A stretch of 64,000 nucleotides of DNA. Source: Podarcis bocagei (lineage: Eukaryota). The translations under genes and the position numbers were made by a program. The notes under the pieces were generated by a model. That model saw only the letters and a list, made by a program, of their open reading frames with translations. It did not search any database and was not told the origin of the DNA. The stretch's first letter is position 1, and each line of letters starts with the position of its first letter. Positions 10,247-17,339 of the stretch are shown here, one piece after another. Location: assembly GCA_964188305.1 (NCBI GenBank), contig OZ076897.1; one strand, written 5' to 3'.

Positions 10247-11092
10247 CCGTATTTTTCGTCCTATAGGGCGCACCGGCCCATAGGACGCACCTAGGTTTTT
10301 TTGGGGGAAATTTTTTTTAAAAAATATTTCCCCCCCACCAGCCGTGGGGCTGGGGCGGGGGAAGCTCGAGCTTCCCCCGACCCCAGCCCCCAGAACACGC
10401 TGCCGCCCCAAGCCTTGCACACCCGGTGGGACCTCCCGCCGGGCGCGCAAGGCTTGCGGACATCTGCCCGAAGCACGGGTCGTGCTCCGCAGCACCCCCC
10501 GTGCTTCGGGCTGCAGGCTACCACCCCAAGCCTTGCGTGCCCAGTGGGACCTCCCGCCGGGCTCCCAAGGCTTGCAGATAGCTTCCTGAAGCCTGGGTCG
10601 TGCTCCGCAGTGCGCCCCGTGCTTCGGGCTTCAGGCTGCTGCCCCAAGCCTTGTGTGCCCGGTGAGACCTCCCGCCGGGCGCGCAAGGCTTGCAAAGATC
10701 TGCCCGAAGCACGGGGCGTGCTCCGCAGCACCCCACGTGCTTCGGGCTGCAGGCTGCCGCGGCAAGCCTTGCAAGCCCGGCGGGACCTCCCGCTGGACGC
10801 GCAAGGCTTGAGGACATCTGCCCAAAGCACGGGGCATGCTCTGGAGCGCGCCCCATGCTTCGGGCTGCAGGCTGCTGCCCGCAAGCCTTGGGAGCCGGGT
10901 GGGCACTCCCGCGGGCTCCCAAGGCTTGCGGATAGCTTCCTGAAGCCTGGAGAGCGAGAGGGGTCGGTGCGCACCGATGCCTCTCGCTCTCCAGGCTTCA
11001 GCGAAAGCCTGCATTCGCCCCATAGGACGCACACACATTTCCCCTTCATTTTTGGAGGAAAAAAAGTGCGTCCTATAGGGCGAAAAATATAG
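10247..11092. mobile_element. Tc1/mariner Tc2-like non-autonomous element with internal GC-rich tandem array
   Basis: TIRs CCGTATTTTTCGTCCTATAGGGCGCAC and GTGCGTCCTATAGGGCGAAAAATATAG; TA on both sides; internal repeats of about 120 bp at 10405-10930. Confidence 0.85.
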
Positions 11093-11937
11093 TATATAAG
11101 CAAACTTTGGGGGAAGAAGTTAGAAATATCCAGAATTAAGCTAACACTCTCATAATTTCCCCATAATTCCCTGTACTTTCTTCTAAAAATACACACACGC
11201 ACAAATTCAAACTGCTTTGGTATTGGTACTTGGGTCTGGCAGGTTTGTTCTCTATTATGAGATATTATTCATGATGTGAGGGATTCTCTCCTTACAATGA
11301 AACATCTGGAATAGCATCTTCACTCCTACGTTTTACAATTATCAGAAGCAGATGCACAATCTTTTTTTAAAAAAAATATGCACCACCAGCAGAAAAGTTG
11401 GAGGTCACCTATTCCTAGTTAAAAGGATCAGGTAGGAAGTGAGGTGAAAGACCTCTGCTGAGATTCTGAAGAGCTTCTGCCAGTCAAAGTAGGCAACACT
11501 GGGGTAGATGGACTAAAATATCTGACCCTGGTTAAGGCAACTTCCTGTGCAAACTTATACACACTGGTATTCCACTGGAAACAACAGGGTTTAGGCACGC
11601 CTAATGGTGGAAGATTTGAAATATGCCTGTCTGGCTACAATTAAATAGAATACAAATATTATTCCAGTCTTTTACAAAAAAGAACATAATGCGTAGGAGG
11701 ACTGTGAGAAGGAGAAATAGGAAAGGAGGAAAGCTTGCTCCTGACTTGACTGCTGTACAAACAATCTTGGCACACCTGCTGGTACGTTTGTTTTAACTGT
11801 TTTCACATGTGGTGTCCTACCCCACTTTTTGCTTTTTAATTGAGAGAGGGAAGATGTACCTAGGAAGAGAGGAGCTGGGGAGAACAAGGGGTCCCCCAAA
11901 CACAGTGGATCAGGGTAGGGGGAGCTAGGGGAGGCAG

Positions 11938-11996
<59 letters not shown>

Positions 11997-12778
11997 TTAG
12001 TTATACCCCGCCCATCTGGCTAGGTTTCCCCAGCCACTCTGGGTGGCTCCCAACAGAATATTAAAATACAATAATCTATTAAACATTAAAAGCTTCCCTA
12101 AACAGGGCTGCCTTCAGATGTCTTCTCAAAGTCTGGTAGTTTTTCCTCTTTTACATCTGGTGGGAGGGCGTTCCAAAGGAAGGGTGCCACTACCAAGAAG
12201 ACCCTCTGCCTGGTTCCCTGTAACTTGCCTTCTCACAGCGAGGGAACCGTCAGAAGGCCCTCAGCACTGGACCTCAGTGTCCGGGCAGAACGATGGGGGT
12301 GGAGACGCTCCTTCAGGTATACTGGGCTGAGGCCATTTAGGGCTTTAAAGGTCAGCACCAACACTTTGAATTGTGCTTGGAAACGTACTGGGAGCCAGTG
12401 TAGGTCTTTCAAGACCGGTGTTATGTGGTCTTGGCGGCCGTTCCCAGTCACCAGTCTAGCTGCCGCATTCTGGATTAGTTGTAGTTTCCAGGTCACCTTC
12501 AAAGGTAGCCCCACGTAGAGCGCATTGTAGTAGTCCAAGCGAGAGATAACCAGAGCATGCACCACTCTGGCAAAACAGTCCGCAGGCAGGTAGGGTCTCA
12601 ACCTGTGGACCAGATGGAGCTGGTAGACAGCTGCCCTGGACACAGAATGGACCTGCACCTCCATGGACAACTGTGAGTCCAGAATGACTCCCAGGCTGCG
12701 CACCTGGTCCTTCAGGGGCACAGTTACCCCATTCAGGACCTGGGAGCCCTCCACACCTGCCCGCCTCCTGTCCCCCAA
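11938..12778 (-). mobile_element. L2-clade LINE 3' fragment with (TTA)n tail
   Basis: ORF 12233-12784 encodes the L2 RT C-terminus (LGVILDSQLS...VHALVISRLDYYNALYVGLP...LQLIQNAAARLV...HITPVLKDLHWLPV); (AAT)n at 11938-11996 is the tail. Confidence 0.9.
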
Positions 12779-12799
12779 AAACATGGGGGACTGTGCCGA

Positions 12800-13065: not shown

Positions 13066-13968
13066 TCCCACCCCCTACTTCTTACAGAAAGTGGGGAGTG
13101 GGGTAGGAGTATAGCCACCCAGAAGCAGCTTCCACAGCTTTGAGGTTACGCAGAAATAAGGAGACACAAAGTTCAGTTTATTTGATGGAGGCCCACACAG
13201 AGCCAGAGTAGACCTGATCGTCAGCACAAGCTTGCCTAGGAAGGGGGTGTTTTTAAAGCTGTCACTGTGCATGAATACGCCACAGATTTGAGGCTCCTGG
13301 CAAACAGTATTTGTTTACTACTGTATAGACATAGCACTGGGATGCTGAAAAGCAGTCTCCTTCTGCTCAAGACTGCGCTCACTTGCGTGACAGATTTGTT
13401 TGTCCTCCTACTCTAGATTTGTCATATGGCAATGCGCAGCAACACTGATGGTTCTTTAGGGTTTCTTCCCCCTCTTTCCACCTACTCCGATGCCACCAAC
13501 TCTACCCCTTCTACACTCGGCTGACCTTTTTCCTGCCACTTGCCATCAGCAAATCCACAAAGGTTGAAATATGTCTGGGTGCCAGCCTTCGACATGTTCA
13601 GATCCACAGTGCTTTTGACAGCCTTGGAAATGTGATCCCAGTTTCTTCACTGGGCTTATCTTGTGTATAGTGAAACGTACATTGCCAGGTTTTGTTAGTT
13701 GTTGGTTTTTAAACTGGCACCTGCAAATCAGTCTCTTTAATATTTCAGATACAGGATGGTATTTCATCATGTCATAAATATACAGAACATTTCTGTCTCC
13801 CCTGTGTCATCCCTTGGTTATGAAATGGACAACTGGACTTCTCACCAGCTTCCTCGAATCAAGAAAAGTCCAGAGCTCAGTTGCAGTAATTAAAAATATG
13901 CTATGTTACAGTGGATGCCTGAAACTCAGTACCTGTTTAAGGACTCCTCCATACTGGTTTTGTTTGTT

Positions 13969-14002
<34 letters not shown>

Positions 14003-14024
14003 GCAGGTGTGATTGACACAGTAA

Positions 14025-14235
14025 AGTAAAGGTAAAGGGACCCCTGACCATTAGGTCCAGTCGTGACCGACTCTGGGGTTGCGGCGCTCATCTCACTTTA
14101 TTGGCCGAGGGAACCGGCGTACAGCTTCCGGGTCATGTGGCCAGCAACGGGAGCTCACCCCGTCACGGGGATTCGAACTGCCGACCTTCTGATCAGCAAG
14201 TCCTAGGCTCTGTGGTTTAACCCACAGCGCCACCC
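14025..14235 (-). mobile_element. Sauria SINE, internally deleted
   Basis: Head and tail of the Sauria SINE joined directly; TSD GTGTGATTGACACAGTAA at 14007-14024 and 14236-14253. Confidence 0.88.
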
Positions 14236-14654
14236 GTGTGATTGACACAGTAATAGTGCATTATACTGAGCCATCCACACAGCATTCTGCTTTATTTGTT
14301 CTGTAATGCTTCCCCAATATTATTGCACTATTGCCATCTGGAGGGGTACTCTTTATACTATGGTGCAACAAAAGCAGGATGCACAAACACAGAGAGAACA
14401 TTTTTGGTATAAAAGGTCACAGGATTTCAGCAGCAGGTTACAGGACATGCAGCGACTGGGGTTGCAGCAGTGTGCCCACCAAGTTTTGAAAGTGAGATCA
14501 CATATAACTGCCCCGATACCGTCGTGAGCAAAAAGGATTGTGAATGAACATTACAAAGGCTGCCTGAAGGGGCCCTAAGTCTCAGATATGAAAACAACTT
14601 CCATTTATAAAGGAAACTAAGAGCCAGAATAGACGCTATCCTGGGCTGGTTTTA

Positions 14655-14764
14655 GAAGGAAGGAAGGAAGGGAGGAAGGAAGGAAGGAAGGGAGGAAGGG
14701 AGGGAGGGAGGGAGGGAGGGAGGGTCAGTCTGGACCAGTACCATTGTCCATGGGAAATGAGATC

Positions 14765-14823
<59 letters not shown>
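14655..14823. repeat. (GGAA/GGGA)n polypurine tract and (GTT)n microsatellite
   Basis: Directly visible at 14655-14724 and 14765-14823. Confidence 0.95.
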
Positions 14824-14824
<1 letters not shown>

Positions 14825-15068
14825 CCCTCCACACATGCTGTGGGCCAAGAACCATAATAATGGTTGCCAGAACCATTAGAGGACCTCAATAGTTGCATAC
14901 CCTTCAACACTTCTCTGATGAAAATAGGAACATCCCATTCCATAATGATAAATTTACTATTTATACCTCACGCATCTTATTGGGTTGCCCCAGCACTCTG
15001 GGCAGCTTCCAACATATATAAAAACATAATAAAACTTTAAACATTTTTTTAAAAAACCCTTCCCTATA

Positions 15069-15373
15069 CAGTGGTGCCCCGCAAGACGAATGCCTCGCAA
15101 GACGAAAAACTCGCTAGACGAAAGGGTTTTTCGGTTTTGCGTTGCTTCGCTAGACGAATTTCCCTATGGGCTTGCTTCGCAAGATGAAAACGTCTTGCGC
15201 TTTTTTCTTTGTGATCATGGTATCTCCCCTGCCAGGTAAGTATGTCTTGCGCTTTTTTCTTAACGCCGCTTGAAGAGGCGCAGTTGCGACGGACCATGCT
15301 TCGCAAGACAAAAAACATCGCAAGACGAAAAGACTCGCGGAACGAATTATTTTCGTCTTGCGAGGCACCACTG
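15069..15373. mobile_element. Tc1/mariner (Tigger-like) MITE carrying the U1 insert
   Basis: TIRs CAGTGGTGCC(C/T)CGCAAGACGAA and TTCGTCTTGCGAGGCACCACTG; TA duplications at 15067-68 and 15374-75; internal CGCAAGACGAA subrepeats. Confidence 0.88.
15210..15243 (-). pseudogene. U1 snRNA 5'-end retropseudogene (3'-truncated, no poly(A) tail)
   Basis: Minus strand reads ATACTTACCTGGCAGGGGAGATACCATGATCAC(A)AAG, i.e. U1 nt 1-37 with one CpG-type G>A change; flanked by the 18-bp direct repeat GTCTTGCGCTTTTTTCTT at 15192-15209 and 15244-15261. Confidence 0.93.
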
Positions 15374-16928
15374 TACAGGATTGCTTTCAGATGGCTTGGG
15401 GGTCGGATAACTCTATACCGTCCAACATTTCTCCAATGAAAATAGGGACATACTAAGGGAAAGTGGGGCAGTCTGGGATCAGGTCAGAAACTGGGATGGC
15501 TTCTCTAAATCAGGGACATCCCTGAGAAATAGGGACACTTGGAGGGTCTGTAGTTGCATGGAAGAGGCAATTTCAGTAGATGGGCAAGCCACGCCTGCTG
15601 AAATGGCAAGACTCCTCCTGCTGAAATTCTCTCTCCTACACAGCTCTGAAAGGTGCATTGAACCATGTTTTCCTTTGCATCAGGCTGCCCTTTGTGGACC
15701 CGATTCAGATCACACACACACACAGAGAGACACACCCCTTGCAGCTGGTATTTCTTTTATGGAAACTAACAACCATCAGCATAGAGAACCTTTAGAGTTG
15801 CAAACCAGACCATTCTCTGCCTCCATCAGGCACAGAAAGCATTGCAAATCTGCACACTCTCCATGCACTCAGCATCCTGCTAAATGAGGCCCCGGTGTTT
15901 CAGCTGAAAGCGCTTCCGAATATAAGCAGACTGCTGAATCTCTTCGTAGCAATATGCCGTCCAAACCAGAGGATTTACCAGGTTATCTAAATCTTTCTAA
16001 GAAAAGTGACAGCCCCCTCTCCTTCTGAAAGTGTTTTCAATTCTCCATTCTGCATGGCATGACACAGAGGCACAAAGGGGTCTTGATGCCTTGGGATTGT
16101 TTAATCATTTCTTGAAAACAATGCAAATGGAAGTCAAAGTTATTTTGATCGCCGTCATCACAGACTGAAAAGGCCTTGGCTGAGTTCTTCTGCCAGACAA
16201 TAGAAGAAAAGGCTGCAAAGAGATAACAAGGAAAAACATGATTAAATCACAGAAGTGACATAAAATCAATAGAGACAGCCAAGGATCAATAATTCTTTGC
16301 TCTGAGTAACAGTCGGCAGCGCTTGCACTCATTTTCAGATTTTTCCGACATTATTACCGACTTGATTTGCAGAAAAAGAGATGACTCTCTTTATTTTTAA
16401 CAGCTCTTCTTATCTTCTGTGTATGTTTAATATTCATCACCTGCAGTTAAAGGTAGTTTAACCCATTCAGGGCAGGCAGTGAGTTGGTTCTAATTCCTCA
16501 TTAAGGGCCAAACCCCCTTTTTTTCAAATAGCAGCTTCAGCAGAGCAGGGGAGGGGAAGGAGGGTATTGTTCCAGATCAGGACAGTGGCAGAGGGGAGGG
16601 GGTTATCCTTTTCCCCTACTCTATTTTTTCTGATGCAAATTTCACCCCTATGCTACAAATTGCTCCAGTAGGAAGAGGTTAAAGATCTCTTCCCCTCTCA
16701 CGTGTCATAGTTCTAACCCAGATTGGGAGGACACCAAAGTTGCTATTTGAAAACAATTTAAAAAGTGAGACAGAGATACATTCACTCACTCATCCTGTTA
16801 GTCTGGCCCTGAATGTATAAGCACATCAGCAATGGAAAAATAAAAGATCTACAGTGAATCTTTGGTGTGCAATGAAGCACACACACATCACTTCGAGTGG
16901 GGTATCAGGAATCACCCTAATTTGAGAC

Positions 16929-17339
16929 CAGTGGCGTAGCGTGGGGGGTACCAGGGGTGCCGGCCGCACCGGGCGCAACATTTGGAGGGCGCGTTTGGCC
17001 GGCCCTCCTCGAGGAAGCAGGAACCCCACTGTCCTCGGACCTCCTCCAAAGGCTGGCGGTGGGGCGGAGAGACCTTCTCCCCGCGCCAGCCTTCGGAAGG
17101 CTGCTCCGAAGCCTGGCGGTGGGGCGGAGAGACCTTCTCCCCGCGCCAGCCTTCGGATGGCTGTCCTGAAGACTTGTGGTGGGAGCAGTGGTGTAGCGTG
17201 GGGGGTGCAGGGGGGCCTGCTGCACCTGGCGCAACATCTGGGGGGCACGCGGAAGAGACTCGAGTGCTAAAATGCACGGGTTAGGGGGCGCAAATTACTT
17301 GCCTTGCCCCGGGTGCTGAGAACCCACGCTACGCCACTG
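16929..17339. mobile_element. Young GC-rich hAT-type MITE
   Basis: Perfect TIR CAGTGGCGTAGCGTGGG / CCCACGCTACGCCACTG; perfect 8-bp TSD TTTGAGAC; internal tandem duplication with a 60-bp period at about 17054-17163; CpGs intact. Confidence 0.9.

Follow-up and report, generated by a model that had tools for sequence, protein, structure and literature searches.

The window analysed here, that is, the whole 64-kb stretch (64,000 nucleotides) of contig OZ076897.1 from Podarcis bocagei, carries two exons of an SHH-type hedgehog gene on its + strand: exon 1 at about 53.8 kb, exon 2 at 62.4-62.7 kb. Upstream of these exons lies a short element with terminal inverted repeats, and within it a fragment of U1 snRNA sequence stands in reverse orientation between two copies of an 18-bp direct repeat (Table 1).

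Table 1. Features of the U1 insertion and of its host element (positions in the 64-kb window).
Feature	Position	Strand	Remarks
Host element with terminal inverted repeats, non-coding	15069..15373	.	305 bp (253 bp pre-insertion)
Left TA flank of the MITE	15067..15068	.	Putative TA target duplication; sequence read
Right TA flank of the MITE	15374..15375	.	Sequence read
Target-site duplication, 3' side	15192..15209	(-)	18/18 identical to the 15244..15261 copy
U1 snRNA retrocopy, nt 1-34	15210..15243	(-)	nt 1 at 15243; nt 34 at 15210
Consensus 5' splice-site motif CAG/GTAAGTAT	15233..15243	(+)	Complement of U1 nt 1-11; GT at 15236-15237
Target-site duplication, 5' side of the U1 sense strand, AAGAAAAAAGCGCAAGAC	15244..15261	(-)	TT before it at 15263-15262

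The termini of the host element, which start with CAGTGG, are inverted repeats of 21 nt with one mismatch. A ~16-bp unit (TCGCAAGACGAAAA), present about nine times and in either orientation, builds up the element, which folds on itself much more strongly than shuffled sequences do (z = -8.3). Inverted repeats, a TA on both sides, small size and the lack of coding capacity are all features of Tc1/mariner-type MITEs, and an element of 305 bp without coding capacity does look like a MITE; the TA flanks and the CAGTG termini suggest that it belongs to the Tc1/mariner superfamily. The preliminary description had placed the U1 fragment inside a MITE, and the length, the inverted termini and the flanking dinucleotides fit this. 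No second copy was found in the 64-kb window, either with a terminal-repeat pattern allowing 3 mismatches or with blastn at word size 7, using the full element and its in-silico pre-insertion form as queries.

Two 34-bp stretches that are 82% alike (14900-14933 and 15418-15451, 518 bp apart) flank the MITE, and related AAATAGGGACA motifs are found at 15507-15537. It appears that the MITE sits within an older repeat, beside a SINE-like tail at about 14960-15060. Just upstream there are microsatellites: (GT)n at 13966-14003, (GGAA/GGGA)n at 14650-14725 and (GTT)n at 14766-14823.

When both strands are read, the minus strand from 15243 to 15211 proves identical to nt 1-33 of U1 snRNA. This 33-nt 5' end occurs a single time in the window, with 0 mismatches, and gave 0 matches in 100 shuffles. 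The U1 pattern was verified against the published human/mouse sequence (...GATCACGAAGGTGG), which is the reference used here. At nt 34, within a CpG site (C33-G34), the window has an A and the human/mouse reference a G. Of the original claim that U1 starts at nt 1 and runs for 34 nt, the start therefore stands, and the exact match is reduced to 33 nt. The A may have arisen after the insertion, by a CpG-to-CpA change, or during copying, by a G:T misincorporation at the first templated base; it may also be the mark of a variant source gene.

In Rfam, a query of 66 nt aligned to the U1 model (RF00003) from model position 1, with a real match to about position 37, at 10 bits and an E value of 0.58. 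The score is far under the gathering score of 69.5, as is to be expected of a fragment; in a search of 1.5 kb with E values up to 10, U1 was not reported, and it surfaced only with the 66-nt query. Matches to int-alpA, CrcZ, Spd-sr37 and sau-5949 were rejected as chance, caused by the sub-repeats of the MITE and by a microsatellite (for CrcZ, the (GTT)n run mentioned above). A functional U1 gene, full-length and with an Sm site and four stem-loops, is not what lies here, and the whole window holds no gathering-level match to RF00003. Lacking a promoter and an Sm site, and with only half of stem-loop I, the insert cannot make U1 RNA. The 5' ends of U2 and U6 and tRNA genes were looked for across the window as well, and none was found; the U2 query came from the published snRNA reference set that was used to verify U1.

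Both ends of the insert are sharp. On the 5' side, U1 nt 1 directly abuts the duplication with no extra bases. On the 3' side, 34 of the about 164 nt of U1 are kept and the adjoining base already belongs to the duplication; there is no A-run belonging to the insert and no A-tail, in agreement with the earlier remark that poly(A) is missing. The copy breaks off in the loop of stem-loop I, which covers model positions 28-37 in the Rfam structure line. The minus strand reads, in order, GCGTT, the 18-mer (15261..15244), the 34-nt insert (15243..15210), the 18-mer again (15209..15192) and GTTTTC, so the arrangement of repeat, insert and repeat reported in the preliminary description is correct on both strands. 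The 18-bp duplication reported there is likewise perfect: AAGAAAAAAGCGCAAGAC has exactly two occurrences in the window, and two or more matches were seen in 0 shuffles. Since the other sub-repeats of the MITE are only 67-90% alike, we read the two abutting 18-mers as a target-site duplication and not as part of the repeat pattern of the element.

The target, TT/AAGAAAAAAG, shows one departure from the published TT/WAAAAWW, its third base being G. The 18-mer begins with AAG, which is also nt 35-37 of U1. This microhomology, which had been noticed before, was confirmed against the published U1 reference; it amounts to 3 nt of complementarity, within the published range of 2-18 nt, and a match of this length between target and RNA has a chance probability of about 1/64. 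A scan for bacterial promoters and terminators, otherwise irrelevant to a eukaryote, drew attention to 15178-15209 (+), where the MITE has a 9-bp hairpin (CGCAAGATG..CGTCTTGCG) and, after it, a T-run on which the target lies. Hairpin and T-run may have favoured nicking.

Tailless retropseudogenes of snRNAs flanked by duplications are an established class (Schmitz et al. 2004; Noll et al. 2015, PMC5322556). Truncated snRNA pseudogenes have been on record since 1981 and are attributed to L1; as cited in PMC4494074, Van Arsdell et al. 1981 described truncated pseudogenes of U1, U2 and U3 with direct repeats. Members of the tailless class have a complete 5' end, a 3' truncation typically located in loops, no A-tail and a duplication of 8-35 nt; their target consensus is TT/WAAAAWW, and the last 2-18 nt of the annealed RNA can pair with the target (PMC5322556). 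The insert shows each of these traits. Its 5' end has no overhang (up to 5 nt being allowed), its 3' truncation goes well past the 10-nt minimum, there is no oligo(A) tail, and the duplication is 18 nt long and 100% identical, where at least 70% identity is asked for. With 34 nt the insert is barely over the 30-nt floor of the published screen.

Taken together, we consider it quite probable that the locus carries a single tailless U1 retropseudogene, made by a LINE in a resident Tc1/mariner-like MITE 38 kb upstream of SHH, and that it is probably a one-off. The + strand would have been nicked at 5'-TTTTTTCTT/AA-3', between what are now positions 15261 and 15262, by the endonuclease of a LINE, most likely a relaxed L1. 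The freed end (...CTT-3') would have annealed to the AAG at nt 35-37, which is unpaired in the loop of U1 stem-loop I, and reverse transcription would have proceeded from this primer up to the capped 5' end of the RNA, U1 nt 1. The + strand copy at 15192-15209 would be the primer, extended into the cDNA at 15210-15243, and a second nick 18 nt off would have given rise to the 18-bp duplication. Reverse transcription reaching nt 1 would place the + strand cDNA directly after the 18-mer at 15192-15209.

The insert might instead have been acquired as DNA, as a piece of a U1 gene or of a cDNA that filled a double-strand break in the MITE with no target-primed reverse transcription involved. The hairpins of MITEs are fragile, which speaks for breakage at such a place, but the insert begins at exactly nt 1 of the RNA and includes nothing from the promoter side of a U1 gene, which points to an RNA intermediate. 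Moreover, a long and perfect duplication at an A-rich TT/AA site argues for staggered nicks by a LINE and against end-joining of a break, which usually deletes bases. DNA-level filler is, in our opinion, highly improbable. The choice among LINEs is less clear-cut. The preliminary description had proposed an internally primed, L1-mediated tailless retrocopy; all the testable features of the class are present, and L1 as the enzyme is our best guess, a plausible one by analogy with the published class, with no L1 seen in the window. A LINE other than L1, either Bov-B/RTE or a target-specific LINE of the Tx1 type that prefers the host MITE family, could have produced the same tailless copy. Bov-B is very active in Podarcis; in Podarcis muralis it is both young and very abundant, and Bov-B insertions start at T/A with a TTT ~10 nt upstream. 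The nick at the U1 insert is also T/A, but in the place of the TTT there is CTCTTC at -11 to -16, and the A-rich TT/AAGAAAAAA site is L1-like. A Sauria SINE in the window, mobilised by Bov-B, has a perfect 18-bp duplication too, so that the length of the duplication does not discriminate between enzymes. The Tx1 variant draws on crocodilians, in which retroelements derived from U1 and U2 share a Mariner MITE target with Tx1 LINEs (Kojima 2015, PMC4494074), yet the crocodilian target sequence is unrelated to that of the U1 insert. The published tailless class, for its part, follows L1 activity, and a relaxed L1 is predicted in lizards (PMC5322556). A non-L1 LINE is thus unlikely, though worth keeping in mind. 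The 3' ends that RTE and Tx1 LINEs recognise are their own, and tailless copying of unrelated RNAs is not known from them.

The Sauria-type SINE just mentioned is tRNA-derived, lies at about 14025-14235 (-), 1 kb from the U1 copy, and has an ACCTTT-like tail; its duplication, GTGTGATTGACACAGTAA, occupies 14007-14024 and 14236-14253. It is a recent retroposition of the Bov-B type. Further upstream, at 12233-12784 (-), a 183-aa ORF (..HITPVLKDLHWLPVRFQAQFKVL..) resembles the C-terminal part of LINE proteins, downstream of the reverse transcriptase, and gives no significant Pfam family.

Placed among known systems, the U1 copy is closest in kind to the tailless retropseudogenes, with which it shares the complete 5' end, the truncation in a loop, the missing tail, the perfect duplication, the A-rich TT/W target and a few nucleotides of complementarity. 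It differs from them in its U1 source, its lacertid host, its length of only 34 nt and its location inside a MITE. Outside mammals, Noll et al. 2015 found tailless copies only in the green anole, where they derive from 5S rRNA and U2, and they predicted a relaxed L1 in lizards (PMC5322556). No literature report of tailless U1 copies in a lacertid (Podarcis-type) genome was found. Inserts of this type are already known, and a U1 copy in a lacertid genome now joins them. As such it adds to the published claim that the LINE machinery of lizards, like that of therian mammals, is relaxed enough for the copying of tailless RNAs; as it stands, it is one further by-product of LINE activity, of little significance.

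Crocodilian elements offer a suggestive parallel. SINEU elements and Tx1-Mar LINEs prefer one Mariner MITE, Mariner-N4_AMi, in which SINEU has a specific 16-bp target; SINEU has a U1 or U2 head, a body and a poly(A) tail, exists in thousands of copies and was not found outside crocodilians (Kojima 2015, PMC4494074). In both cases a U1-derived 5' sequence was placed by a non-LTR retrotransposon in a non-autonomous DNA transposon of the mariner type, in a reptile. The Podarcis insert, however, has neither body nor tail, uses an unrelated target and is known from one copy, and so it is not a SINEU. Chimeric retrocopies in which U6 or another snRNA is joined to L1 by template switching (Buzdin 2002; Garcia-Perez 2007; both as cited in PMC4494074) are similar in that an snRNA was copied by a LINE reverse transcriptase and is flanked by duplications. 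As far as that account of them goes, the chimeras carry a 3' part from L1, Alu or an mRNA and a poly(A), whereas the U1 piece abuts its duplication directly. Pack-type MITEs, finally, also hold foreign sequence between intact inverted termini. Their cargo is acquired as DNA and amplified with the element; the U1 cargo has a retroposition duplication of its own, and no second copy with the cargo is known.

Further copies of the MITE family came to light through proteins. An exhaustive phmmer search with the 84-aa ORF that runs across both junctions of the insert matched two Podarcis muralis models in UniProt, an ARHGAP20 (A0A670HXA1) and an ACBP (acyl-CoA-binding protein, A0A670I6E0), whose C-termini are MITE-derived and show 75-77% identity to the translation of the left arm. 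At least two more copies of the family must therefore exist. The second model, A0A670I6E0, aligns in a single frame over the in-silico pre-insertion element (RNC..GVKKK / QDV.LRSKPIG.FV), without U1; where the A-rich target lies, it has six residues more. At least one paralogue is therefore free of U1 at the target site, which is weak evidence for a one-off. The same phmmer search, a weak test of the matter, found the junction between U1 and MITE in no other protein, and its third match was a chance one of low complexity. A protein search started from A0A670I6E0 returned only itself. Neither the 84-aa ORF nor the closest ORF beside it (109 aa) had an exact match on record, and word-indexed protein searches with both gave no matches, the first blank being partly the effect of a length filter. 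In metagenomes, the sole match to a 20-nt terminus of the MITE (L001:8163-8182) was rejected as chance, lying on a microbial-looking contig with no MITE structure and no inverted partner.

These copies bear on the more far-reaching reading, namely that U1 entered a master copy before amplification and that the transposon now spreads splice donors or U1-binding sites as a U1-tagged subfamily. Termini and TA flanks are intact, so that mobilisation is still conceivable in principle, and the crocodilian SINEUs with their U1 heads are closely tied to a Mariner MITE (Kojima 2015, PMC4494074). Divergence would also allow it: insert and duplication have one mismatch in 52 nt (34 + 18) and the termini one in 21, values that are indistinguishable and too few to order the U1 insertion relative to the MITE. 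But the window holds one copy of the MITE only, the other copy that can be read across the target site (A0A670I6E0) is without U1, the weak protein test revealed no further junction, and the prior is low, since all but a tiny fraction of MITE copies never serve as sources. A tagged subfamily appears improbable to us. If one considers jointly a mobile master copy that scatters perfect 5' splice-site or U1-binding motifs over a lacertid genome, including the one upstream of SHH, and a target-specific LINE that repeatedly places snRNA copies in the host MITE family, this broader proposition is still improbable; the second alternative would, if true, be the counterpart in lizards of what SINEU and Tx1-Mar do in crocodilians.

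A related idea is that the insert was co-opted where it stands, its + strand donor or U1-binding site serving a transcript upstream of SHH in splicing or in the suppression of early polyadenylation. Like the hedgehog exons, the donor is on the + strand; it lies 38 kb upstream of SHH and is, over 11 nt, the perfect complement of the U1 5' end. The preliminary description had thought of splicing or stabilisation of enhancer RNAs near SHH, and nothing in the analysis supports this. The perfect donor announced in the preliminary description is thus real, but it is an automatic by-product, since any antisense U1 5' end is that donor. Chance alone would give 0.5 occurrences of the consensus 9-mer CAGGTAAGT per 64 kb; the window has one, and 39 of 100 shuffles have at least one. 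Moreover, the site is embedded in repeats (the MITE, SINE-like tails and microsatellites). We assign a very small probability to co-option. The U1 insert is most likely an ordinary RNA pseudogene and a one-off, and the copy is most likely neutral, as we infer, and confined to this locus. It would matter if the junction were multi-copy, with a transposon spreading consensus donors, or if the donor were used by transcripts upstream of SHH; none of the findings points to either.

The protein models also deserve a comment of their own. Both A0A670HXA1 and A0A670I6E0 end in residues of the MITE family (...FRLASFSSCEAFVLRGTTVP), and these tails are likely read-through, annotation artefacts or exonised MITEs. 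Upstream of its MITE-derived tail, A0A670HXA1 contains PPPGIGASS... repeats. The repeat translation of two GC-rich stretches of the window resembles them (10290-11200 and 16830-17290, 61-69% GC, where both strands carry long ORFs and peptide motifs recur internally), and these stretches are probably another dispersed tandem-repeat element.
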